DNA of 54,299 nucleotides from Prasinococcaceae sp. CCMP 1430 (lineage: Eukaryota; Plantae; Prasinodermophyta), in the NCBI GenBank assembly GCA_013416795.1, contig RQSC01000014.1, positions 431,400 to 485,698 of the forward strand. The letters run 5' to 3'. The position numbers and the translations under genes were made by a program. Under the pieces are notes generated by a model. It saw only the letters and a list, made by a program, of their open reading frames with translations, did no database searches and was not told where the DNA came from. This document shows positions 4,248-45,643 of this stretch, piece by piece; position 1 is the first letter of the stretch, and each line of letters starts with the position of its first letter.

Positions 4248-6593
4248 ATGGCGAGCGTGCGCGCGGCTGCCTGCACCAATGCGGCGGGTGGCGCCGCGGA
4301 CAAGGAGAACCCCGGCGAGGCGGGCAGGTTGATAGAAGCGCTCGCGTGTCAGGCGACGCTCCTGCTGGACGGCGGCCGCCGGCGCGTCGTGCTGCGCGGC
4401 GCCAGTGTGCGCGTCGCGCACGACGAGGAGCGCGGGCCGGCGCTCGAGGTGTCCAGCCGCACGCCCAAGCCGCGCCGCGAGCTCGTGACGCTGCGCGGCG
4501 TGCCCGTCGCTGTGATCAAGAACTTTGTGCGTGCGGGCAAGGCGACCGTCACCGCGGGACCCATCTCGGTCATGCTCGCCCAGGCGGATCCGCTCGACCT
4601 GCGCGATTGGCTGGCGGCACTGCACCTCTTCCTCACGGGCAAGGTGTGCGACGCGTGCCCGCGCCCCATTCCGTGCGTGCGTGTGTGAACGCGCGCGCGT
4701 GCGCGCGCGCGCTTGACAAGGTGTGCGCCCGCCGTCCCACGCGTCGCGCGTGCACTCGTATGCCTTGATGCTAACCAGAGCCGCCGGCCACGTCGCGCTC
4801 CGCACAGCTGAAAATGGGCGCGAGGAAGTCTCCGACCATGCCGGGCTCGGGCGGCAAGGTCAAGCGGCGAAGGCCTTTCAGCCCGCTCGAGCGGCAGACG
4901 CGGCCAAGGACCGACGACGCCGGCGCCAACGACGCGAGCTTCGGCGGCTTCGGCGGCGCGTCGGACGTGCGCGACCCTGGCACGCACGGCGTCACGGGGG
5001 GCGCCGTGCGGCTCAACTTCGAGCAGGCCGAGGCGCTTCGCTACGTCCGCGGCGGGCGGTCCATCCTGCTCACGGGCTCGGCGGGCACGGGCAAGACGCG
5101 CACGCTCAACGAGATCATCAGGAGCCTGCCACGAGCGACGACCTTCGTGACGGCCACGACGGGCCTCGCCGCGAGCCACGTGGGCGGCATGACGGTGCAC
5201 GCATTCGCCGGCGTGGGTGTGTCCGACTCGACGAGCGTGGCTGGCTTCGTCGCGGCCGCCAGGCGCCCGGCGGCAGCCGCGCGCTGGCGGTCGTGCACGC
5301 ACCTCGTCGTGGACGAGATCTCCATGCTGAGCGCAGACCACTTCGACTGGCTCGAGGCGGCCGCGCGCGTGGCGCGCGGGAGCGACGCGCCGTTCGGGGG
5401 GATTCAGCTCGTGCTCAGTGGCGACTTCTATCAGCTGCCGCCAGTTGAGAAGTACGACAAGCACAGGAAGGTGCGTGCAATGCAATCCCTCGTCGCCGCG
5501 GCGACACGAGAGGCACCGCACACCTCTCGCGGCGTCTCGTGCCTCCGCGCGCTCGTGCCTCGGCCCGTGCTTCCCCCACGGCTGACGCGCGCCTGCCGCG
5601 CCGCTCGATGGCCGCGCGCGCGCATCCTCGCGCACGGGTCGCGCGCAGCCGCCGCCGCATTCGCGACGCTTCGCGTTCGAGGCGGAGAGGTGGGACGCGT
5701 GCCGCCTCGCCCCAATGGAGCTGCGCCAGGTCTTCCGCCAGGAGGACGTGGAATTCAGCGCCATGCTCGATCGCGTGCGCGAGGGGCGCGTCGGGAGCGA
5801 GCTGCTGCAGGAGCTGCGGGCAAAATCTGGAGCGGTGAGTGCGCACGCGAGTGCGCGCGCAGCGTCAAGCCCGCGCGCGCGCGCGCGCGCCGTCCGGGCT
5901 GGGCGCAATGCCGCGCGCGCACTTGCTCGAACGCGCGCGAGCTGACCGCCGTCGCACGCGCAGGACCTGGATGAGGACGACGGAATTCTTCCCACGTCGC
6001 TGTTCACCCATCGCGCGGATGTCGCTGCGATCAACGCGCGCCAGCTCGAGGAGCTGCGAAGCCAGGCGAACACGTACATCGCGCGCGACGTCGGGTCATT
6101 CAGCGGCTCGTCATGCCCAGCGCGCGACAAGCTGCAGCTCAAACTGGGGGCGCAGGTGATGCTCGTGCGGACCATCGACACCAGGCGAGGCCTGGTGAAC
6201 GGCGCGAGGGGCGTGGTCACCAAGCTCGGCGGCGCCACCGGCCTGCCGACGGTGCGCTTCGCGTGCGGCGTGGAGGAGGTCGTGCAGCGCGAGCGGTGGA
6301 CTGTGGTCTCGCAGGGGCGCACCATCGGCTCGAGGGAGCAACTCCCCCTGGAGCTCGCGTGGGCGCTCTCCGTGCACAAGTCGCAGGGGATGACGCTCGA
6401 CCGCGTCGAGGTGTCGCTGGCGAACTGCTTCGAGTGCGGTCAGGCGTACGTGGCGCTCTCCCGCGCGAGGTCACTCGCGGGCCTGCGGATCATCGGCGCG
6501 CTGCCGGCGTCGTCCGTGCGGACGCACCCCAAGGTCGCCGCCTTCTACCGCGACATGCGCGTGCAGATCGCTCAGGCCACCGCCAAGGCGTGA
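4248..6593 (+). CDS. PIF1: PIF1 5'-3' DNA helicase; exons 4248-4643, 4808-5470 (alt. acceptor 4781), 5649-5834, 5964-6593
   Basis: PIF1 N-terminal PH-like domain (KNFVRAGKATV...VMLAQADPLDLRDWL), GSAGTGKT, DEISM, GGIQLVLSGDFYQLPPV, VFRQ, HKSQGMTL, GQAYVALSR. Three GT-AG introns in phase; TGTAA 6624-6628. Confidence 0.93.
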
Positions 6594-7557: not shown

Positions 7558-7610
<53 letters not shown>

Positions 7611-10670: not shown

Positions 10671-11714
10671 TCACTTCTTTCTTTGGCGCGATCGTGCGCA
10701 TCGTAGCAGCTTTGCGACATCGTCGTTGCCGAACGACTCGGCGATATCGAGTGCCGTGCGGCTGTCGTTCTCAGCAACGGTCATGGACGCGTCGGCGCCC
10801 GCGTCGAGCAGCGCTTGGGCGCAGTCGGCGTGGCCATCCCGGGCAGCGAGCATGAGCGCAGTCCATCCATTGTCGTTGGTCTTGTCCGTGTCGGCGCCCG
10901 CGTCGAGCAGCGCTTGGGCGCAGTCGGCGTGGCCTTCCTGGGCAGCGAACATGAGCGCAGTCCAATCGTCGTTGGTCTTGTCCGTGTCGGCGCCCGCGTC
11001 GAGCAGCGCTTGGGCGCAGTCGGTGTGACCTTTAAAGGTTGCGAGCATGAGCGCAGTCCATCCCTCGTCGTCTTTCATGTCCTTGTTGGCTCCCGCCCCG
11101 AGCAGCAGCCGAACGCAATCGAGGTGGCCACATATGGCTGCGATCATCAATGCAGTGGGGCCATCTACTGCGGCGTTCTTGTCGGCGCCCGCCTCGAGCA
11201 ACATCCGGAGACACTCCGCATGGCCAAAACCGGCTGCGAGCATCAACGCAGTACGGGCACCCTTTCCTACATTTTCCTTGTTGACGCCTGCCTTGAGCAG
11301 TACTTGGAGGCAGTCGACGTGCCCTTCAATGGCTACCATCATCAACGCAGTAAAGCCATCAGAATTCTCAGCCTCAAGATCTGCGTGGCGCGAGAGTGCG
11401 TGCCTGACTGCGCGCTGCTGGCCGTCCCCTGCGGCACGCACGAGGACCTCGTCTGCGCCGCACTGCTCGACGAGCGCATCGAGGGCCCAGCCGAGATCCT
11501 TTCGCGCGGCATCGCGATCCTCTCGCGCCTCGCACACGGCAGTAGCGTTGACACCGAGCGCCTGTGTGGCGAGCAGCAGCGCGTGGCGCGTGCTCTCTGC
11601 CATCGCGGATCCTGAGCCCGAGGCGCGAGCGAGGTTGCCGCCGCCGCCGCCGCCGCCGCTACTGCCGCCCGCGGCGCCGCCGCTACTGCCGCCCGCGGCG
11701 GCGCCGTCCGCCAT
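10671..11714 (-). CDS. Ankyrin-repeat protein (about 7 repeats), paralogue A
   Basis: ATG 11714; repeated TALMxAAxxGHxDCxxxLLxAGAD; three near-identical ~96-99-bp repeats at about 10790-11050. Confidence 0.9.
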   Translation of the reverse strand: MADGAAAGGSSGGAAGGSSGGGGGGGNLARASGSGSAMAESTRHALLLATQALGVNATAVCEAREDRDAARKDLGWALDALVEQCGADEVLVRAAGDGQQRAVRHALSRHADLEAENSDGFTALMMVAIEGHVDCLQVLLKAGVNKENVGKGARTALMLAAGFGHAECLRMLLEAGADKNAAVDGPTALMIAAICGHLDCVRLLLGAGANKDMKDDEGWTALMLATFKGHTDCAQALLDAGADTDKTNDDWTALMFAAQEGHADCAQALLDAGADTDKTNDNGWTALMLAARDGHADCAQALLDAGADASMTVAENDSRTALDIAESFGNDDVAKLLRCARSRQRKK

Positions 11715-16934: not shown

Positions 16935-17837
16935 CTATGTTTGAGCTTTAACGTGGTGGCGACATCGAGCTGTGAGCACCGCGACGCAGTGATCGTCGCC
17001 GATCTCTGCTGCGTAAATTAAGGCAGTCTTGCCGTCGTTGTCCACCTTGTTGGCGTTGGCGCCCGCCTCGAGCAGCAGCCGGAGGCAATCCGTACCTTCG
17101 CCAGAGTCCACTGCCCAGAACAACGGAGTCCAGCCAAAGACGTCTGCTTTTTCCGTGTCTGCGCCCGCCTCGAGCAGCAGTCTGAGGCAATCCGTACCTG
17201 CGCCAGAACCTACTGCCCAGAACAACGGAGTCCAGTCGTTGCTGTCTGCTTGTTCCGGGTCGGCGCCCGCCTCAAGCAACAGCCGGAGGCGGTCGATGTC
17301 GCCAGCTATGGCTGCGCGCGAGGTCGCGGGCAAGCGCCAAGCGTCCATCGCGGCGAGCTCGCACTCCGCTCGCGCCTCGCGCACGGCGGCAGCGCTGACG
17401 CCCATCACCTGGGCCACCAGGAGCAGCGCCTGGCGCACACGCTCCGCCGACGTGGCGCGAGGGCCGTCGGCTCCGTCGCAACCGTCTAAAGAGCCGCCGA
17501 TGCGATGGCCGCTGCTTTTGCCTGCGGCACCGACTTGGCGGCACTGGCGCCCGTGTTGCTCCCGCGGGCACCACACTAGTGACCAAGGAGGATCGCGACC
17601 ATGCTTGCGCAGCCACGATTTGAGGTGCCAGACACATATCTCATCACACCAAGCCCGAGTCCGTATCGCGTCAAGATCCTCTTGCGCCTCGCGCACGGCA
17701 GCTTCGTTGACGCTCACCGCCTGCACGGCCAGCAGCAGCGCATGGCGCGCGCTCTTCGCCGATGCGGAGACCAAAGGCCGAGGGTCGCCACCGGCGCCGC
17801 CGCCGCTGCTGCCGCCCGCGGCGGCGCCGTCGGCCAT
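16935..17837 (-). CDS. Ankyrin-repeat protein (about 4 repeats), paralogue B
   Basis: ATG 17837; same MADGAAAGGSSGG start as paralogue A; WTPLFWAV...DCLRLLLEAGAD repeats. Confidence 0.88.
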   Translation of the reverse strand: MADGAAAGGSSGGGAGGDPRPLVSASAKSARHALLLAVQAVSVNEAAVREAQEDLDAIRTRAWCDEICVWHLKSWLRKHGRDPPWSLVWCPREQHGRQCRQVGAAGKSSGHRIGGSLDGCDGADGPRATSAERVRQALLLVAQVMGVSAAAVREARAECELAAMDAWRLPATSRAAIAGDIDRLRLLLEAGADPEQADSNDWTPLFWAVGSGAGTDCLRLLLEAGADTEKADVFGWTPLFWAVDSGEGTDCLRLLLEAGANANKVDNDGKTALIYAAEIGDDHCVAVLTARCRHHVKAQT

Positions 17838-19774: not shown

Positions 19775-19775
19775 N

Positions 19776-20630
<855 letters not shown>

Positions 20631-20919: not shown

Positions 20920-21011
20920 GCTCCCATAGTCTAGGTGGTTATGACAACAGACTCTGACGCAAATCTATGCACAGCTATCTGTAGGCCTGGGTTCGACTCC
21001 CAGTGGGAGCT
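20920..21011 (+). tRNA. trnQ-CUG: tRNA-Gln(CUG) with a 19-nt intron at the canonical 37/38 site (20958-20976)
   Basis: Acceptor GCTCCCA/TGGGAGC; D-arm GTC/GAC; anticodon stem ACAGA/TCTGT with CT-CTG-A; T-arm CTGGG-TTCGACT-CCCAG; discriminator T; TTTTTT terminator 21013-21018. Confidence 0.93.
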
Positions 21012-21112
21012 CTTTTTTCCCCGTTGTATCTGAGTCTCCCGTGGGTAAGTTATATTACTATTTACATTACACATCGCATCGCATATGTCCTGTCATGCCT
21101 CTGTCACGCATC

Positions 21113-25460: not shown

Positions 25461-25500
<40 letters not shown>

Positions 25501-25512
25501 CACACACACACG

Positions 25513-25601
<89 letters not shown>

Positions 25602-25641
25602 GCACGCACACACACATGCGCACACACATGCGCACACACAC
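25461..25641. repeat. (CA)n microsatellite
   Basis: About 180 nt of CA with CG/TG interruptions. Confidence 0.95.
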
Positions 25642-25970: not shown

Positions 25971-26059
<89 letters not shown>

Positions 26060-26069
26060 CGCACACACA
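25971..26069. repeat. (CA)n microsatellite
   Basis: About 100 nt of CA repeat. Confidence 0.95.
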
Positions 26070-38863: not shown

Positions 38864-40546
38864 ATGGAGGCGCTGCGCGCCGCGTACGGCGGCGAGAGCT
38901 CGAGCGACGACGAGGGGGCGGCACCGGCGGCGGCGGCGGCGGCGGACGCGATGTGCTCGTCGGGCTCAGATTCGGACTCGGACTCGGACTCGGACTCGGC
39001 CTCAGACTCCGGCTCGGGCTCGGGCTCAGAGCGGGGCGGCGACGCCAGCAGCGAGACGAGCAGTCTTTTTTCTGACGAGGAAGAGCAGCGCGCGCGCGAC
39101 GCCGCGCGGGAGATGAAGACCGCGCGCCGCGCTGTGGCGGCCATGGATGCGGGTGACGACAGCGACGACGAGGGTCCGGGCGGCGCGGGCGGCATCGGCG
39201 TTGCGCCGCGCACAAAGAACGAGGCGGCCGCCCCTCCCGCGCTGCCGCCCGTTGCCTTTCAGCCCGTCGCCACCGACGCGGCAATTGGCGCCGCAGGCAC
39301 CGTTGTCGCAGGCGTGCCCGAGTGGCTAGGATACGCATGGTACGTCATACGCGCCGACGTGACCGCAGGCATCCTCGACGAGGGCTCGCAGCTCTGCACG
39401 GGCGACCGGGAGCCGCTGGGCGTCGTTGACGAGGTGTTCGGGCCCGTGAGCGCGCCCTTCTACACGCTGCGCATGCCTGTGCCAAAGGCGCGAGCCGCGC
39501 AGCGCGAGGACGCCCCCTCAGCATCGGCCGGCGAGCCCGAGCAATTGCAGCCCAAAGCAGACACGCCCGTGCCGGCGGAGCCGGCGGCGGCCACCGACGC
39601 CGCGGACGCCCCCCCTGCCAACCAGCCGGAGACAGCGAGCGTTGCGCCAGCCGACCAGAGCGAGGACGCGCTGCCGGGGATGCGCGGCGCCGAGGCCGCA
39701 GCTCAGGCTGAGGACAGGGCCGCCGCTGCTGTGGTCACCGAGGTCGGGGGCGACGCAGGCGCTGCTGCTGCCGAACCCGAGCTCCCGCCATCCACGCGTT
39801 TTCCCTGTGCCGGCGAAGAGGTGTACTTCGTGCGTGAGCAAGCGCTGTGGCTACTGCCCACGGAGCACTACCGCAACAAGGGCTATGACGCGAGCGGCGA
39901 GGCCGACGAGGAGCTGCCTGCGCACATGCAGGAGTACTCTGATGACGAGGCCGAGGCGGAGGCGAGGGCCGCGCGCAAGCAGAAGCGTCGCGAGCGCGCT
40001 GCCGGCGCGATGGACGCTGAAACTGCGCTCGCGGGCGGCAGCGGTGGTGGGCGTGGTCAGGGCAGGGGACGCGGCAGGGGGAACGGCGGGCGCGGTGGAA
40101 AATCAGGTGCAGAGGGGCGCGGCCGTGGCCGTGGGCGCGGTCGTGGGCGCGGCGCTGGGCGCGGCGTCGGGGGTGCGACGCCCGGCGCTATGATGCCCGG
40201 CGTGGGCATAATCCCGGCGATGACTGGAGGGGCGGTGCCCGCTATGGGCGGCATGGGCGGCCCGTACATGGGCGGCGCGTATGGCGCACCGATGGGCATG
40301 GGTATGCCTGGTATGCCCGGCATGCCAGCGGGGGGGCTGCCGCCCACGTCGATGATGCCGCCGCAGCTGGCGATGGCCTTCGCCAACCACCAGATGGGTG
40401 CAATGGGCATGGGTATGCCGCCACCCAGTGCATGGCATCCGCAGCACCCGCAGGTGCAGCCCGGCCAGCAGCCACCGCCGCGCGGGCCACCGCCGCACGG
40501 CCCGCCCCAAGGCTATCCGCCGCCGCGCATGCCACCGCCGAGATGA
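38864..40546 (+). CDS. NAF1: H/ACA RNP assembly factor NAF1
   Basis: Ser/Asp-rich N-terminus, Gar1/Naf1 core LDEGSQLCTGDREPLGVVDEVFGPVSAPFYTLR, NKGYDASGEADEE, RG-rich and Pro-rich tail. Confidence 0.88.
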   Translation: MEALRAAYGGESSSDDEGAAPAAAAAADAMCSSGSDSDSDSDSDSASDSGSGSGSERGGDASSETSSLFSDEEEQRARDAAREMKTARRAVAAMDAGDDSDDEGPGGAGGIGVAPRTKNEAAAPPALPPVAFQPVATDAAIGAAGTVVAGVPEWLGYAWYVIRADVTAGILDEGSQLCTGDREPLGVVDEVFGPVSAPFYTLRMPVPKARAAQREDAPSASAGEPEQLQPKADTPVPAEPAAATDAADAPPANQPETASVAPADQSEDALPGMRGAEAAAQAEDRAAAAVVTEVGGDAGAAAAEPELPPSTRFPCAGEEVYFVREQALWLLPTEHYRNKGYDASGEADEELPAHMQEYSDDEAEAEARAARKQKRRERAAGAMDAETALAGGSGGGRGQGRGRGRGNGGRGGKSGAEGRGRGRGRGRGRGAGRGVGGATPGAMMPGVGIIPAMTGGAVPAMGGMGGPYMGGAYGAPMGMGMPGMPGMPAGGLPPTSMMPPQLAMAFANHQMGAMGMGMPPPSAWHPQHPQVQPGQQPPPRGPPPHGPPQGYPPPRMPPPR

Positions 40547-40682: not shown

Positions 40683-42632
40683 CTAGAGCGCGAAGCTGCT
40701 CGCGATGAACAGCCAGATGCGCGAGCCGAGGAACATATTGGACCAGCGCAACGCCACCGATGCGCTCTGCGCTACCTTCTCCCTGAAGTTGCGGTAGAGA
40801 AGCATCTCCAGGCCATTGACCAGGTTGTAGCGCGTGTTCGACGAGAACGCCATGTGCACGAAGCCCGCGGCCGCCGCGCGCGCCATGTAGCCCAGGGTGA
40901 AGGTCTCCCAGCTGCAAATGCACGCGGCGACGATCGCGCGGCTTAGCACGCAATTCACGGCGCCGATGGCGCCGTACAGCTTGACCTTTCCAAAGAAGCA
41001 CGCGGCACGGTCGGCCAGCGTGTAGTCGCCCGGCTCGAACACGTGCGCGCACTTGCGCTCTGCCTTATCGGCGTTGTCCTTGGCCCCGCCAGGCGCCAGG
41101 AAGTACACCAGCATGAAGTCGTTGAGAGCTGCCTGTACCATGTGGCACAGAACCTGCACCCAGTCTGTCATCGCCCACGTGAGCATCGACCCTCGCACCG
41201 CGATGTTGGTGAGGATCGTCGTCACCTCGTCCAGGCAAATCTCCGTGCCCACCTTGAACAGAAATTTGGGGTCCTTCTCGAGCCTGCTGTCCACCCCCGC
41301 GCGGAGTCCTCGGATCAGCCCTTTGCGCGGCGCCTTGTCCTCCTTGGGTACGTCGGGTGCCGCAATGCGCGCCACCCCGGCGTTCTCCTCGACCAAGCCG
41401 GGCAACAGGCTGCTCAGCTCCCTCTGTCCCCGCGCGTGCGCGGCGAGCGAGCGCAAAATGAGCTCCCTCGCGTAGTAGAAGTCCGACCAGTCGAGCCCGC
41501 GCACGGTGTAGCTCCCGATGGCGGTGCCCTTGACGGTCAGGAGATTGCATCGCTGGATGTGCAGGTCCAGACCCGTCGTGAGCGTGTTCAACGAACGCAG
41601 GAAGACACCGGCGGTATCGGGACACTCAACCAGGACGTGCGCGACCCGGTCGCCCGCCTCGCCCGCGGGCACGAGTTGCGCGGTGAGCACGCGCGGCTCG
41701 CGGCCCGGAAGGCGGACCCCCGAGTCGAGGGTGACCTTCTTGACGCCGCGCACGGGCATCTCGTGGTGGTCGCCGTCGTCGGGCCGCCAGCCTTTGAACA
41801 GCTCGCCGATGGGCATGGCGATGGAGAAGGTCGCCAATGCCTCCTCGCCTGCGGGCCAGCCGGCCTGCTCCATCATTTGCCTGTCACCGCGGATCTGCTC
41901 GCACACCTTACTCGCGAGCTGCTCGAAGCTGCTGCGCGGGAGCTGGCCGTACTCGCCGGGGCGCCGCCCCATCTGCTGCACGAAGAACCGCAGGCGCGAG
42001 AGGCCCTGCCAGTTGGCGTCCTCGGTGTACGCGCGCGAGATGTTCAGCCTCGCCGCGCCGCTGCCCTCGTCGAAGACGTTGACGATGTCGACCAACATGC
42101 CCTTCCTGTCGATGCCCTCGGCAGTCACCAGCGTCCACGCCTCGCCGGGCTCGTTGTACAGCGAGCAGCGCGCGCCGCCGGTCGACTCGGTGTAGTACAC
42201 GCTCGGCGTGAACTGCACGCCCTGCGGGCTCGACACGAGGCCGGGAGCGCTGGCCGGATCTGTCGCCTGGACGTCCTGCGCGGCGGCCCTGCCCCCCCCT
42301 GTGGCAGCGAAGAGCTGAAAGGAGCCGCCCGAGCCGCCATCGTGCTCGGACTCGGCCTCCTTGGCCGCGCTCACCTCGTGCTCGACGACGACCGCCTCGA
42401 GCCTCTCGGCCGCCTGCGGCTGGTAGAGCACAATGCCATCGCCGTCGGCGCTCCTCTCAGCGGTCACGCCGTCGGCATCGACCTGCAGTCGGAGCGAGGC
42501 CGGAGGCTCGACGGTCGACAGCTCGGCGGCGACCTCGACATCCGTGGGCGCCTCGCCCGCACCGCCGGTCGCGGCCGTACGCGGCGCCGCGCGCCAGCTC
42601 TCATTCCCCCCCCCACCGGCGGGAGGGGGCAC
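40683..42632 (-). CDS. Two ACT-like domains fused to a RETICULATA-related (DUF3411) membrane domain; start codon unresolved
   Basis: DPKFLFKVGTEICLD, FEPGDYTLADR, KVKLYGAIG, FSSNTRYNLVNGLE, VALRWSNMFLG match recalled RER motifs. TLVTAEGIDRKGMLVDIVNVF and HVLVECPDTAGVFLRSLNTL...LHIQRCNL are ACT-like. The ORF-track start is GTG; ATG 42711 is out of frame across a C9 run. Confidence 0.82.
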   Translation of the reverse strand: MPPPAGGGGNESWRAAPRTAATGGAGEAPTDVEVAAELSTVEPPASLRLQVDADGVTAERSADGDGIVLYQPQAAERLEAVVVEHEVSAAKEAESEHDGGSGGSFQLFAATGGGRAAAQDVQATDPASAPGLVSSPQGVQFTPSVYYTESTGGARCSLYNEPGEAWTLVTAEGIDRKGMLVDIVNVFDEGSGAARLNISRAYTEDANWQGLSRLRFFVQQMGRRPGEYGQLPRSSFEQLASKVCEQIRGDRQMMEQAGWPAGEEALATFSIAMPIGELFKGWRPDDGDHHEMPVRGVKKVTLDSGVRLPGREPRVLTAQLVPAGEAGDRVAHVLVECPDTAGVFLRSLNTLTTGLDLHIQRCNLLTVKGTAIGSYTVRGLDWSDFYYARELILRSLAAHARGQRELSSLLPGLVEENAGVARIAAPDVPKEDKAPRKGLIRGLRAGVDSRLEKDPKFLFKVGTEICLDEVTTILTNIAVRGSMLTWAMTDWVQVLCHMVQAALNDFMLVYFLAPGGAKDNADKAERKCAHVFEPGDYTLADRAACFFGKVKLYGAIGAVNCVLSRAIVAACICSWETFTLGYMARAAAAGFVHMAFSSNTRYNLVNGLEMLLYRNFREKVAQSASVALRWSNMFLGSRIWLFIASSFAL

Positions 42633-43083
42633 GCCCCTGCCGCCGCCGCCGCCGCGCTCGCGCGCGCGCGCGGTCCGTTTGTTTTCCCGCCCGTATTAGG
42701 ATACGCTCCATTTCGTTACAAATGAAGGATTCCAAAATCGCCATAATACTTCACATAACATCCAAAACATCCGATGTGGATTCCGTTATACTTCGGTACA
42801 GCACCGAATCCATTCGGGGGTTTGGGGGGGCACCTCGCGCCGTGGTGCGAGCCGGGAGTACATGGTTCGTAATGAGGTGAAGTGAGGGCACGGGCGAGCT
42901 CAGTTTTGAGATGGCGACAAGGGCAGGGCTGCGGTTAGGGCTTGCGGTGACCCTTAGGGTTGTTGAGTTTAGGGTTCATGCTATCGGAGCTGCTCCGGCG
43001 ACGAGTCCGATCCGATCCGGGCGCGGCGACCGCTGGCCCGTGCCCGCGCTCCGCTGTTGGTCGCGCGGGCGTGCGCTCGCTTC

Positions 43084-45111
43084 TCACGTGGCCCTGACCT
43101 CCTTGCTCGCCGCGTGCCCCCGGTCCCACACGCAGTAGAGGTTGCGCCCGCCGCCCTCGAGCGCGTACTGCACGTACCGGCGCCGGGGGCGCAGGTGCGG
43201 GAACGCGTCGCTGTCCCCGTTGATGTGTGTGTGGCCGTACACATGGACGTCTGCGTCGACGGCGTCGATCTGCTCGTCGAGCTCGAGGCAGCCCACCGCC
43301 TTGGCCATCTCAGGCACGCACGTCGAGAATGGCAGCTCGCGCCGCGGCAGGAAGTGCGACAAGGTCAGCACGCGATCGCCCTCCTCGCGCTTGAAGGTGC
43401 GCATCTGCGCCTCGTTGAGCTTGAGCATAATCTTCCACGCGACCAGGTGGTCCACGGGCCACTTGCAAAACTTGTCAAAGCGGACTCTCCCTGGCCGCGG
43501 GTCATCAACGTCGTACTCGTGGCTGTACCAGCTGTAGAGCGGAACGACGAACAGGCCGCGCGCCACCTCGGCGGGCGCCACCTCGACGCCGAGTTCGTCG
43601 CAACAATCGACGAGCGACAGCAGCTTACACACTGAATCAGGAAAGTCTCTGTCCTCTAGCCCCGGGCGGATCCAGAGGTCGTGGTTGCCTGGAACGTAGA
43701 AGACGCGCCTGAACTTCGCCTTGAGCTTACGCAACCCCTGGCGCACGGCGTTCAGCGTGTCGCCCACGTCGCCGGCGACGAGCAGCACGTCCTCCTGAAA
43801 GTTGGTGTCGTGGATGGTGGAGCACCAGCCGATGTTGCCGTTCGTGTCAACGTGCAGGTCGGAGCACGCGAACACGCGCGTGGATGTGCGCGGACGATGT
43901 GCGTGCGCGCGCGCCCAGCGCGCGAGACGCTTGCGCGCCCGCGGCGAATCCCATCTGCACATCGCGCCGAAGGCGTCTGAGCGCGCCTGGCGGAGCGAGC
44001 TCAGCTCGGACGCGGCGACGCCTGCTGCGTTGCACGCCTGTAGGCCACGAGCGGCTTGCCAGTACGCTTCTTCAGCCTCACCCGCACCAAGCTGCGCGGC
44101 CACCGCGCGCACATGCGCACGCGGCCAAGCGGGGGCGTGTGCGAGTGCACTGCGTGCGTCCGCCAGAGCCCCCTCCCACTCGCCGAGCTTCGCGCGGCAG
44201 GCAGAGCGATTGGACAGAAGACGCGCGGCGGCATCGCCGCGCGTGGCGTATGGCAGCGTGCGCGAGTACGCGTTCGCAGCAGCCTCGTAGCGGCCCTCCT
44301 TGAATGCCGCGTCGCCATCGGCCTTTTCTGCCCCCGCGCGCTCACCACCGTCAACCGCGAGAATCGCGCGCTCGTACTCACGATTTGAAGGGTCGAGCGC
44401 AAGCGCGCGTTCGTACGCCTTGCGCGCGTCCGAGTGGCGCCCAAGTCCATAGCACGCCACCGCTCGTCGGGCATGCGCCTTCGGCCACCCTGGGCGCAGC
44501 GAAACGCAGGCTTCGGCATGCTGCAGCGCACGCTGGTGGTCATCGCACGCTGACCTTGCCGCGGCGGCATTAGACAGTAGCGTGGCGCGTTCCCTCGCGT
44601 CGACGGCGTCCTCCTCGCCACCACCAAAGATCTCGCTGCAGTCCTCGAGCATCGCAAGCATGCGTTCGTAGAGCCGGGCGGCGAGCTCGTGGCGGCCGGC
44701 CTTGAAGAGGCCCGCCGCGCGCTCGCGGTCATTCGAGCCGAGCGAGATTACGTCTCGGCACATCTTGAGGCCACTTCTGCATCCTTCATCAGCGGCGGTG
44801 ACCTGCAGGCCCGCCATGAAGGCCGCCTCTGCTTCGCTGAAGCGCGCGAGGTAGAACAGCGCGGTGCCGCGGCGGCCGTGGCCCTTGGCCCATCGGGGGC
44901 GCGCGCGCAGGCCGCGATCGGCGTCGGCCAGCGCGTCCTCGAAGCGCCCTAGCTTTGCGAGCGCGGCGCTGCGATTGCCGAGCGGGCGCACGTCATCAAC
45001 AGGCGCGCCCTCGCGCACGGCTTCCGTGTAGTGCCTCACGGCTTCCGACCACGCTCCCCGCCGGAACGCCTCGTTGCCGCGTGAGCGCGCCGCCTCGCCC
45101 GCGGACGACAT
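43084..45111 (-). CDS. Three TPR clusters (STI1/Hop-like) fused to a calcineurin-like metallophosphoesterase
   Basis: GNEAFRRG...NRSAALAKLG...WAKGHGRRG-type cluster occurs three times, then SDLHVD, AGDV, VPGNHD, LSHFLP, YGHTH. Confidence 0.88.
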   Translation of the reverse strand: MSSAGEAARSRGNEAFRRGAWSEAVRHYTEAVREGAPVDDVRPLGNRSAALAKLGRFEDALADADRGLRARPRWAKGHGRRGTALFYLARFSEAEAAFMAGLQVTAADEGCRSGLKMCRDVISLGSNDRERAAGLFKAGRHELAARLYERMLAMLEDCSEIFGGGEEDAVDARERATLLSNAAAARSACDDHQRALQHAEACVSLRPGWPKAHARRAVACYGLGRHSDARKAYERALALDPSNREYERAILAVDGGERAGAEKADGDAAFKEGRYEAAANAYSRTLPYATRGDAAARLLSNRSACRAKLGEWEGALADARSALAHAPAWPRAHVRAVAAQLGAGEAEEAYWQAARGLQACNAAGVAASELSSLRQARSDAFGAMCRWDSPRARKRLARWARAHAHRPRTSTRVFACSDLHVDTNGNIGWCSTIHDTNFQEDVLLVAGDVGDTLNAVRQGLRKLKAKFRRVFYVPGNHDLWIRPGLEDRDFPDSVCKLLSLVDCCDELGVEVAPAEVARGLFVVPLYSWYSHEYDVDDPRPGRVRFDKFCKWPVDHLVAWKIMLKLNEAQMRTFKREEGDRVLTLSHFLPRRELPFSTCVPEMAKAVGCLELDEQIDAVDADVHVYGHTHINGDSDAFPHLRPRRRYVQYALEGGGRNLYCVWDRGHAASKEVRAT

Positions 45112-45231
45112 CCTCGCCGCGCGCGCGGGGACCCATGCGCGGCGCATGTGCCACCCACTCTGCCTTGCTCCGTCCGCCCCACCACCACCACCACCGGCGC
45201 GCCCATCCGCGGCGCCGGCGCCCGCCTCGCG

Positions 45232-45468
45232 ATGTCGCGACGCTGCGCGCAGGAGCCCGTCCCTCGGCACGTGGACCCCGAGGCTCCGCGGGTGGCGCGG
45301 GACCCGAACCGCGCGCTCACGAGCGAGACGGCTCTGCACAAGGCGCGCAAGGACAGCGCGCGGCGGCAGTCGGACCGCCACGCCGTCGTACTGCTCGCCA
45401 TCGCCGTCGTCGGCGTCATCGTCTTCTTCGGAGCCGCGGCCGCGTACCTGTTGGGGCGCTACGGCTGA
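45232..45468 (+). CDS. Small protein (78 aa) with a C-terminal TM helix, possibly tail-anchored
   Basis: ATG to TGA, GC3-rich; VVLLAIAVVGVIVFFGAAAAYLLG at the C-terminus. Confidence 0.55.
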   Translation: MSRRCAQEPVPRHVDPEAPRVARDPNRALTSETALHKARKDSARRQSDRHAVVLLAIAVVGVIVFFGAAAAYLLGRYG

Positions 45469-45643
45469 GTGCGCCAAGGGAGGGGTCGCTGGCTGCGCTG
45501 GCACCACGCACGACGGCGCGGCGCCCGGCGCCGCGCCGCGCGCGCCACTCCCACAGTAATAAGATCTTGCACTCTTCACACCGGCCGCGCGGCGCGAGCG
45601 GGCGCGCCGACGGGGTGGTGGTGGCCGTCCCTCGCGCGCCTCC

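Follow-up and report, generated by a model that had tools for sequence, protein, structure and literature searches.

The window, the whole 54,299-nt stretch of DNA analysed here, encodes on its minus strand a single protein that joins a tandem pair of ACT-like modules to a RETICULATA/DUF3411 membrane domain, a fusion that is real and rare. Our preferred reading, which we hold at a probability of about 0.5, is that the gene is nuclear and belongs to a GC-rich, plastid-bearing alga, probably a green picoalga, and that its product would be a plastid-envelope amino-acid carrier with a ligand-gating, GlnD/ACR-type ACT-like pair. The parts of the gene and its upstream region, listed in the direction of transcription, are as follows.

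42933..42976, minus strand: three CCCTAA telo-box-like motifs, ~220-265 nt upstream of ATG 42711
42712..42830, minus strand: AT-rich upstream region (promoter or 5′ UTR), GC 0.37-0.38 at ~42693-42790, without codon periodicity
42604..42711, minus strand: candidate start codon (ATG 42711-42709) and leader, with the frame broken somewhere within
42682..42685, minus strand: A4 run, the other possible place of a one-base length error (A3 in L004, an independent contig of the same species from another assembly)
42606..42614, minus strand: G9 run (C9 on the plus strand), the candidate error site of the original prediction (G10 in L004)
42243..42632, minus strand: N-terminal region, aa 1-130, rich in Ala, Gly and Glu, with short Gly runs, poorly conserved
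41862..42200, minus strand: ACT-like module 1, aa 145-257, with two predicted leading strands and then β-α-β-β-α; DRKGML at aa 175-180
41742..41861, minus strand: inter-module linker, aa 258-297, pLDDT 32-50, conserved between the two closest orthologues only
41433..41741, minus strand: ACT-like module 2, aa 298-400, with two predicted leading strands and then β-α-β-β-α; loop PDTAGVF
41286..41432, minus strand: linker between module 2 and the membrane domain, aa 401-449, of varying length among orthologues; in-frame third-position GC 0.86
40809..41285, minus strand: RETICULATA-like/DUF3411 domain (PF11891), aa 450-608
40683..40808, minus strand: C-terminal tail, aa 609-649, ending ...SSFAL, and stop codon (40685-40683)

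Positions 40683..42632 form a single open frame of 649 codons plus stop, whose start as listed is a bacterial-code GTG. Along this entire ORF, GC at third codon positions is 0.83-0.97 and at second positions 0.42-0.67, a pattern that marks all of it as coding, the stretch that links N-domain to membrane domain included. Nor does the ORF contain any AT-rich trough like those between genes: its minimum 90-nt GC is 0.54, compared with 0.37 just upstream, at ~42693-42790. Residues 1-130, which can be aligned with a 59%-identical orthologue in short patches only, are coding by the same measure (third-position GC 0.83-0.87) and contain the Gly stretches GGGG (aa 6-9) and GGSGGS (aa 99-104). The GC content of the window is ~0.70; that of Prasinoderma coloniale is 69.8% (PMC7455551). 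The opposite strand at the locus holds an ORF of 560 codons and, elsewhere in the assembly, an 854-base G run following an N is an artefact. The original prediction had described an uninterrupted frame and a single gene, and both descriptions hold: the 649 codons are coding throughout with no internal gene-boundary signal, and one coding frame spans both halves in four lineages.

The gene product belongs to the RETICULATA/DUF3411 family. PF11891, the sole curated Pfam match of the ORF, scores 62.4 bits against a cut-off of 25 (E 6e-17) and is matched over profile positions 2-177 of 177, and the orthologues score 54-72 bits; a complete DUF3411 domain, previously placed at 41273-40683 (aa 454-649), is thus recovered at aa 450-608. 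DUF399 gave no match in the Pfam scan of the window protein. The membrane domain is the best-conserved part among the aligned family members. Kyte-Doolittle analysis (19-residue window) finds two clearly hydrophobic blocks, at aa 491-513 and 544-584, and weaker ones at the C-terminus of orthologues; RETICULATA proteins cross the membrane with four to six helices, located within DUF3411 and close to it (PMC12449267). The four family members aligned end in FAL, FAL, GGL and VGL, with an invariant Leu in the same alignment column, and all four lack the C-terminal GxQ motif that is conserved in RE1 and RER1 and whose terminal Gln is essential in RE1 (PMC12449267). This absence argues against orthology to RE1 or RER1, not against family membership, and with (A/G)-L in place of GxQ the protein may have another substrate and even a different transport activity.

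The sequence signal for ACT domains is carried mainly by the orthologues. Pfam ACT models gave no match on the window protein at E<=1, nor on the isolated modules at E<=10. P0003 and P0004, both distant orthologues, give sub-threshold matches to Pfam ACT and ACT_4 at the expected positions of both modules: ACT at E 2e-4 and ACT_4 at E 3e-4 to 3e-3 for module 1, and ACT at E 2.3e-3 and 0.077 and ACR10_N at E 0.15 for module 2, with scores of 18-19 bits (ACT) and 21.7 bits (ACT_4) against a cut-off of 27. P0004 also has a faint precomputed ACT_ACR_D1 match. Aligned with each other by hhalign, modules 1 and 2 match at E 8e-5 (probability 61%), so that an internal duplication is detectable. In the PDB, sequence and profile searches found no significant match for the N-region, for either module or for the N-domain profile as a whole; the best profile matches, both non-significant, were the SerB ACT domain for module 1 (E 0.86) and the IlvA regulatory domain for module 2 (E 0.17).

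The DRKGML motif noted in the original prediction lies at aa 175-180 of module 1, where D-R-x-G is invariant (DRKGLM or DRPGLL in the orthologues), and module 2 conserves P-[DN]-x(2-4)-G-[LV]-F with an invariant Gly. The glycine of the β1-α1 loop is thereby invariant in both modules in 4/4 lineages. In ACT domains, the glycine-containing β1-α1 loop is the usual ligand site.

Structure prediction adds to this signal. A first AlphaFold model, built on two aligned sequences, was set aside for its poor quality (pLDDT 42); an AlphaFold2 model of the N-domain, built from four sequences and cut at aa 400, reached a mean pLDDT of 66.5 and a pTM of 0.46. It places β-α-β-β-α cores at aa 167-257 and aa 330-399, at pLDDT about 70-86 (~67-85 over the whole of module 1 and ~66-86 over module 2), and these coincide with the positions 42140-41930 (aa 165-234) and 41650-41440 (aa 328-397) given in the original prediction. 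In this model, cut at aa 400, no strand is predicted after α2 in either module and two leading strands are predicted instead, which makes the modules ACT-like in topology, not textbook ACT; the predicted topology fits a strand-first ACT-like variant. In a Foldseek search against the PDB, 11/12 matches at E<=1e-3 are tandem-ACT proteins, among them the large GDH, 2nyi, the GcvR-like 1u8s, SerB2 and aspartate kinase (E 9e-6 to 1e-3, probability 0.99-1.00). Single-domain matches include the ACT-like domains of maize R and GL3 (TM 0.66-0.75, rmsd 2.5-3.4 Å), and non-ACT matches also occur, to BMC-shell proteins (EutL at rank 6) and Arp2/3 chains.

We therefore assign an ACT nature to both modules with moderate confidence, on the strength of sub-threshold matches in orthologues, a medium-confidence model and the internal duplication. 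The earlier identification of the modules as ACT gains from the modelled fold, the Foldseek result, in which the best PDB matches of the two modelled ACT-like modules are mostly tandem-ACT proteins, and the orthologue matches; the curated threshold is never reached on the window's own sequence.

The architecture is rare and is conserved where it occurs. A profile of the N-domain searched against 1.84 billion representative proteins retrieves three real clusters, two of which (2/3) carry PF11891 downstream; the third, P0002, is a frameshift-broken fragment of the same gene. A fourth match, P0005, was rejected as spurious, being a repetitive coiled-coil zinc-finger protein matched through a biased repeat. 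The continuous frame of N-domain and PF11891 is found in four lineages at 36-59% identity, so that the fusion described in the original prediction extends beyond this one genome. The closest orthologue, from a TARA metagenome, shares 59% identity with the window protein over aa 131-649, and its gene, like the window gene, lies next to a convergent Naf1 gene; the orthologue P0010 is an intact, ATG-led ORF of 681 aa whose leader has an in-frame ATG, is rich in Arg and Ala, contains no acidic residues and includes a G7 run.

Protein searches by word index, for which the ORF, P0004 and the alignment of four sequences served as queries, gave only P0001 or the query among the matches listed; low-complexity words overran the limit of 8000 candidates, P0003 and P0004 were missed, and the result says little on the absence of relatives. 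JGI metagenome contigs were scanned for peptide patterns of the family and for an exact match to a leader 26-mer, and yielded nothing. In the searchable literature we found no report joining RETICULATA-RELATED proteins with an ACT domain, and the papers that name PF11891 do not concern an ACT fusion.

At the 5′ end, TAA 42698-42696 bounds the main frame upstream, and no in-frame ATG lies between that stop and aa 178, so that the window as given lacks an intact eukaryotic ORF. The frame from ATG 42711 ends at TGA 42603-42601 and is offset from the main frame by 79 nt (1 mod 3), which means that deleting one G of the G9 run (42606-42614) would join the two. The original prediction had accordingly proposed a 1-nt error in the C9 run and an Arg-rich leader read up to it. 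The arithmetic stands, but codon usage and L004 suggest that the defect is not simply there: over 42680-42604 the codon log-odds are -20.2 bits for the leader frame versus -1.4 bits for the main frame, which disfavours the proposed leader up to the C9 run, and the main frame is favoured from ~42695 onward. These codon statistics point to a frame break near 42680-42711, not at the C9 run. In L004, ATG 42711 and the following codons are conserved, and the G10 at the G9 site is followed by ~300 extra, very GC-rich bases that the window does not have. A length error in the A4 run instead of the G9 run would agree with codon usage; because L004 is error-prone, we only infer this site. A 19-nt GT...AG segment (42616-42598) would restore the frame arithmetically if it were an intron, and was rejected as too short and not mirrored in L004. 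Further upstream, AACCCTAA occurs in 2 copies at 42933..42976, the sole ones in the 54-kb window, with 0.21 expected by chance.

On the preferred reading, the protein would run from a targeting leader through a Gly/Ala/Glu-rich low-complexity stretch and the ACT-like pair to the DUF3411 membrane domain. The family is confined to plastid-bearing organisms (PMC12449267); indirect evidence of a plastid in this organism comes from another gene of the window, nuclear and coding for a ResB/CCS1-like protein of plastid cytochrome c biogenesis (PF05140, E 3.8e-26). That gene, the intron-poor structure and the GC content would together fit a prasinophyte-grade green alga such as P. coloniale. RETICULATA transport, described in the original prediction as proposed, has since been demonstrated for RE1 and RER1, which carry basic amino acids across the plastid inner envelope and are the only two of the eight Arabidopsis family members with a demonstrated substrate (PMC12449267). 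Most likely, the ACT-like pair would bind an amino acid that is itself the transported substrate or that stands at the end of a pathway, such as glutamine or one of the basic amino acids, at the glycine-containing β1-α1 loops or at ACT-ACT interfaces between protomers of a carrier oligomer. Binding would then throttle transport allosterically, through feedback or trans-inhibition of the kind mediated by the ACT-like domains of MetNI; this sensor-gating is the step that we infer purely. Tentatively, at somewhat under even odds, such a self-regulating plastid amino-acid carrier would be the first DUF3411/RETICULATA transporter with a built-in tandem ACT sensor.

If so, the ligand of the ACT pair would reveal which class of substrate is carried by a divergent RER clade lacking GxQ, and flux through RETICULATA carriers could be gated allosterically by metabolites. 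Basic amino-acid transport by the RETICULATA family was shown only in 2025, and the ACT-like fusion offers independent support, of the Rosetta-stone type, for linking the family to amino-acid or small-metabolite homeostasis beyond land plants. As an expressible soluble domain, the ACT-like pair lends itself to ligand screening more easily than a hard-to-handle membrane protein lends itself to reconstitution and, should gating be real, it could be transferred as a regulatory unit when amino-acid export from plastids is engineered.

The ACT-like pair could alternatively be a structural oligomerisation or docking module that assembles or stabilises a multimeric carrier without ligand gating. ACT-like domains of plant bHLH factors serve dimerisation, and the best single-domain matches (TM 0.66-0.75) are to such dimerising domains, those of maize R and GL3; the predicted strand-first topology and the drift of the motif from canonical DRPGLL to DRKGML in the window protein point the same way. 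RE1 and RER1, moreover, form a complex of ~250 kDa, and RE1 acts as a high-molecular-weight homo-oligomer (PMC12449267). Yet canonical RE and RER proteins oligomerise without any ACT-like domain, the β1-α1 loop glycine is invariant in both modules across four lineages, and tandem ACTs regulated by ligands (SerB2, aspartate kinase, GcvR-like) make up most of the best two-domain matches, which leaves a purely structural role rather unlikely.

Two further readings are less likely still. The protein might be a membrane-anchored metabolite sensor, or a member of a divergent RER clade with a non-amino-acid substrate, with DUF3411 acting mainly as an anchor or as another kind of carrier: the GxQ that RE1 needs (PMC12449267) is missing, with Leu at the end of every member, PF11891 is matched at a modest 62 bits, and a substrate is established for RE1 and RER1 alone. 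We consider this improbable, since the DUF3411 profile is matched at full length, the membrane domain is the family's best-conserved part, and ACT domains are mostly tied to amino-acid metabolism (PMC7932691). The fusion might also be an artefact, a chance read-through of two genes in 70%-GC DNA, or a pseudogene whose 5′ end is genuinely disrupted in this genome. No in-frame ATG precedes aa 178, ATG 42711 being out of frame, the opposite-strand ORF is a reminder that long ORFs arise by chance in this DNA, and the 854-base G run attests to gross assembly artefacts elsewhere. This reading we regard as very improbable, given the same continuous frame in four lineages, codon-position GC and codon usage that mark coding sequence from ~42695 onward, and the intact ORF of P0010; furthermore, two assemblies of this species disagree at the site of the defect, which is very rich in GC and rich in homopolymers, a pattern that points to a sequence or assembly error. 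We therefore retain the gated carrier as the preferred reading.

Among known systems, the closest comparison is with RE1 (LCD1) and RER1. Like them, the window protein has a full PF11891 near its C-terminus, a short tail with a sharply conserved end, and a putative N-terminal leader followed by Gly-rich low-complexity sequence, and it probably comes from a plastid-bearing organism; an N-terminal plastid transit peptide and a polyglycine stretch are family features (PMC12449267). Unlike them, it inserts ~260 residues of tandem ACT-like modules between leader and membrane domain and ends in (A/G)-L, not GxQ. The known case of DUF3411 joined to a second domain is that of the land-plant proteins RER5 and RER6, which carry an extra DUF399 (PMC12114778); their partner domain is C-terminal, whereas that of the window protein is ACT-like and N-terminal.

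On the side of the sensor, the modules resemble GlnD/ACR ACTs (PF01842, PF13291, PF26956) in their order of leading strand, strand, D-R-x-G-L-L loop and helix and in their tandem repetition; the corresponding models match the orthologues weakly, always below gathering thresholds, and do not match the window sequence. ACR proteins are soluble and consist of ACT repeats only, and GlnD carries enzyme domains. Mycobacterium avium SerB2 (5is2, 3p96), Corynebacterium glutamicum aspartate kinase (3ab2), the GcvR-like 1u8s and Galdieria 2nyi are among the best Foldseek matches (probability 0.99-1.00, E 4e-5 to 1e-3), at a sequence identity of 9-12% and a whole-model TM of 0.20-0.25, which is low because module-to-module orientation and linker are not comparable. 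Finally, the MetNI methionine ABC importer is, like the proposed carrier, an amino-acid transporter with paired ACT-like domains; these are C-terminal and mediate trans-inhibition, according to the passage of PMC7932691 that cites Kadaba et al. 2008. MetNI is an ABC ATPase with its ACT-like domains on the ATPase subunit, unlike a DUF3411 carrier, and the resemblance, functional only, provides a precedent for substrate gating.

The open reading frame at 40683–42632 on the minus strand encodes an N-terminal domain (N-domain) with two modules (aa 145–257 and aa 298–400), followed by a RETICULATA-like domain; its 649 codons are counted from a GTG start of the bacterial code. Because long open reading frames arise by chance at a GC content of ~70%, which the window keeps throughout, the coding character of this frame was checked separately; the opposite strand carries a 560-codon open reading frame over the same ground. 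GC at third positions is 0.83–0.97 versus 0.42–0.67 at second positions across the whole frame, and the linker that joins the N-terminal region to the membrane domain shows the same bias. There is no AT-rich dip of the upstream-intergenic kind within the frame (lowest GC inside 0.54), and upstream of the gene GC falls to 0.37 at ~42693–42790. The sole curated Pfam match in the protein, RETICULATA-like/DUF3411 (PF11891, aa 450–608, 62.4 bits, cut-off 25), covers the full profile. Codon-position GC, this match and the conserved fusion described below confirm the original prediction of two modules ahead of a complete DUF3411 domain in one frame. Beside this coding bias and the single frames of the relatives, a broken gene is one of the lesser alternatives.

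A word-index protein search with the target frame returned one homologue, P0001, from a TARA ocean metagenome scaffold (L001), which is 59% identical to the target protein over aa 131–649 and unalignable before aa 131. Both genes have the same convergent neighbour downstream:

Window 38864–40546, plus strand: Gar1/Naf1-domain gene
L001:2447–4138, minus strand: Gar1/Naf1-domain gene

The stop-to-stop gap between the target gene and this neighbour is only ~137 nt, and the conserved micro-synteny marks P0001 as a syntenic orthologue. A profile built on aa 131–430, the conserved part of the N-terminal region, and scored against 1.84 billion representative proteins gave only four matches at E ≤ 1e-3. 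One of these, P0005, a repetitive coiled-coil zinc-finger protein, was rejected as a compositional match. P0002 is a fragment of the window's own gene on an error-prone contig (L004; 93–96% identity to the window) and is too short to reach PF11891, which L004 encodes just downstream, split off by frameshifts. The remaining two, P0003 (602 aa, JGI sample 3300017048, which we take to be a culture transcriptome) and P0004 (538 aa, 5′ end cut, Logan assembly of SRR13370304), are 36–37% identical to the target protein, and in each a single frame runs from the N-domain into PF11891. This linkage indicates that, as far as HMMER can see, the N-domain is found only ahead of a RETICULATA-like domain and that the predicted fusion is conserved in four lineages, which answers, as far as sequence can, the worry that the two halves are separate transcripts.

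The ACT nature of the N-domain was predicted on the basis of its motifs, and this has held in part. No Pfam ACT family matches the whole target protein at E ≤ 1 or its isolated modules at E ≤ 10, and the N-domain is not a demonstrated member of the curated Pfam ACT family. Among the relatives, module 1 of P0003 matches ACT (E = 1.5e-3 in the whole-protein scan, 2e-4 as the best isolated-module value), module 1 of P0004 matches ACT_4 (E = 3.3e-4 and, in isolation, 3e-3) and module 2 of P0004 matches ACT (E = 2.3e-3, whole-protein scan); the best isolated-module values for module 2 are E = 0.077 (ACT) and 0.15 (ACR10_N), and a faint ACT_ACR_D1 match is precomputed for P0004. Against PDB sequences, the profiles of modules 1 and 2 rank the SerB ACT domain (E = 0.86) and the IlvA regulatory domain (E = 0.17) first, neither significantly. 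Compared by hhalign, module 1 and module 2 prove related across strand, loop and helix (E = 8e-5, probability 61%). In the four-sequence alignment, module 1 has the invariant pattern Y-N-E-P ... T ... E ... D-R-x-G and module 2 the pattern P-[DN]-x(2-4)-G-[LV]-F, which we take to correspond to the leading strand, strand, glycine loop and helix of GlnD/ACR-type ACT repeats. Taken together, these similarities are sub-threshold yet consistent.

Structure modelling supports the same assignment with medium confidence. AlphaFold with a two-sequence alignment was useless (pLDDT 42), and with four sequences gave a mean pLDDT of 66.5, with ~70–86 in both modules, each of which is modelled as two leading strands followed by beta-alpha-beta-beta-alpha. 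In a Foldseek search of the PDB with the N-domain model, 12 matches reached E ≤ 1e-3, all but one of them (11/12) to tandem-ACT proteins, namely mycobacterial large glutamate dehydrogenase, Galdieria 2nyi, GcvR-like 1u8s, SerB2 and aspartate kinase. Maize R and GL3 match the model through their ACT-like domains, with TM 0.66–0.75, and non-ACT matches occur too, to tandem BMC-shell proteins, with EutL at rank 6, and to an Arp2/3 subunit. With about 80% confidence, we read the N-domain as a tandem pair of ACT-like modules.

Besides the target gene and its convergent neighbour, the window has these features:

4814–5974, plus strand: PIF1-like helicase frame (PF05970, E = 1.5e-31)
10791–11200 and 17058–17290: tandem repeats of 99 and 102 nt (33–34 codons), 84–86% identity
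19008–20693, minus strand: ResB/CCS1-like gene of plastid cytochrome c biogenesis (PF05140, E = 3.8e-26)
20920–21012, plus strand: tRNA gene, 92–93 nt (Rfam, 54.9 bits)
25461–25641 and 25971–26069: (CA)n microsatellites of 90 and 49 units, inside a 911-codon ATG frame
43084–45579, minus strand: TPR repeats fused to a calcineurin-like metallophosphoesterase domain, the target gene's upstream neighbour on the same strand

Within the ResB/CCS1-like gene, 19775–20629 reads as N followed by 854 uninterrupted G, poly-Pro on the minus strand, and another run, of 50 G, is found at 7558–7607. Assembly or gap filling almost certainly created both runs; they account for the GC-skew spike at 20–22 kb and lessen trust in the assembly at G-rich spots such as the 5′ end of the target gene. 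With its ResB/CCS1-like gene in the nucleus, as is the case in green algae and plants, the window is in keeping with a plastid-bearing host of the green lineage, and the GC content of Prasinoderma coloniale (69.8%; PMC7455551) is similar to that of the window. The tRNA gene, for which ARAGORN made no anticodon call, suggests an intron-containing nuclear tRNA; the tandem repeats may encode ankyrin-type repeats; the helicase may belong to a Helitron-like or other mobile element or be a host PIF1; and the 911-codon frame has no Pfam match.

The main frame of the target gene is closed upstream by a TAA at 42698–42696, and its first ATG falls at aa 178, within module 1. The candidate start, ATG 42711, borders on the AT-rich upstream region and, with its first eight codons, is the same in L004; its frame stops at a TGA (42603–42601). 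The original prediction joined this leader through a 1-nt error in the C9 run (G9 on the minus strand, 42606–42614). Removing one G does join the frames; codon usage and L004 complicate the proposal, and it needs revision. Over 42680–42604, codon-usage log-odds, trained on the target gene and three of its neighbours, score the main frame at −1.4 bits and the ATG frame at −20.2 bits, so the point where the two frames meet probably lies before the G9 run, no more than ~30 nt from the ATG. At 42682–42685, an A4 run is A3 in L004, a lead only, because this independent contig (ENA ERZ28548065, labelled 'chicken_3'), from the same organism or one very close to it, is riddled with deletion-type differences. 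At the G9 run itself, opposite window 42598–42606, L004:4247–4557 has ~300 extra, extremely GC-rich bases absent from the window, which could reflect a collapse in the window's assembly or strain polymorphism; they include an ATG followed by Ala/Gly-rich codons. As the 681-aa form of the orthologue (P0010) has an intact in-frame ATG and an Arg/Ala-rich leader without acidic residues, with a G7 run further on, the target gene very likely has a leader too. In the P0003 contig (L002), the fusion gene is flanked by L002:3351–5903 (minus strand) and L002:21–1460 (plus strand), by eye a STE20-type kinase-like gene and a long RelA/SpoT-homologue-like gene; the kinase-like frame and the beginning of the P0003 frame share ~85 nt, making that 5′ end doubtful as well. 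Three telo-box-like CCCTAA motifs lie ~220–265 nt upstream of ATG 42711 (42933–42976, minus strand), and AACCCTAA occurs there in two copies, the only ones in the 54-kb window (0.21 expected by chance).

A plausible and best-supported reading is a carrier with an ACT-like allosteric regulator: the DUF3411 part would carry amino acids or closely related compounds across the envelope, and the tandem ACT-like pair would regulate it when an amino acid binds to the glycine loops or to the interfaces between protomers of an oligomer. The main rival, itself reasonable, is that the pair is purely structural and serves oligomerisation, as the strand-first topology of the modelled modules and their matches to dimerising bHLH ACT-like domains would favour. 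Less likely, with the C terminus speaking for it, is a role as a sensor or in the transport of compounds other than amino acids. Work from 2025 established that Arabidopsis RE1 and RER1 carry Arg, Lys, ornithine and citrulline across the plastid inner envelope and reported that their family occurs in plastid-bearing organisms only; RE1 forms a complex of ~250 kDa, RER proteins with predicted inner-envelope localisation have an N-terminal polyglycine stretch, and a C-terminal GxQ motif is essential, function being abolished by loss of the last Gln or by a C-terminal tag (PMC12449267). The proteins with the ACT-like fusion have a sharply conserved C-terminal end, but it is (A/G)-Leu in 4/4 members, and with GxQ missing they are not of the RE1/RER1 type in that respect.

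The architecture is real and rare. The analysis shows the domain order, its conservation, the similarity of fold and the family membership; location, substrate, ligand binding and gating are inferred. In the literature searched, no paper pairs RETICULATA-RELATED proteins with an ACT domain, and those mentioning PF11891 concern other matters; as far as we can tell, the fusion is undescribed. In the protein collection searched, these proteins are labelled RETICULATA-like only, as automatic annotation would show with the ACT part below Pfam thresholds. The known two-domain architecture of land plants joins DUF3411 to a C-terminal DUF399, in RER5 and RER6 (PMC12114778); the fusion here is a new domain architecture made from two known families. 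For the regulated carrier, the closest functional precedent is the MetNI methionine importer, in which paired ACT-like domains mediate trans-inhibition (PMC7932691).
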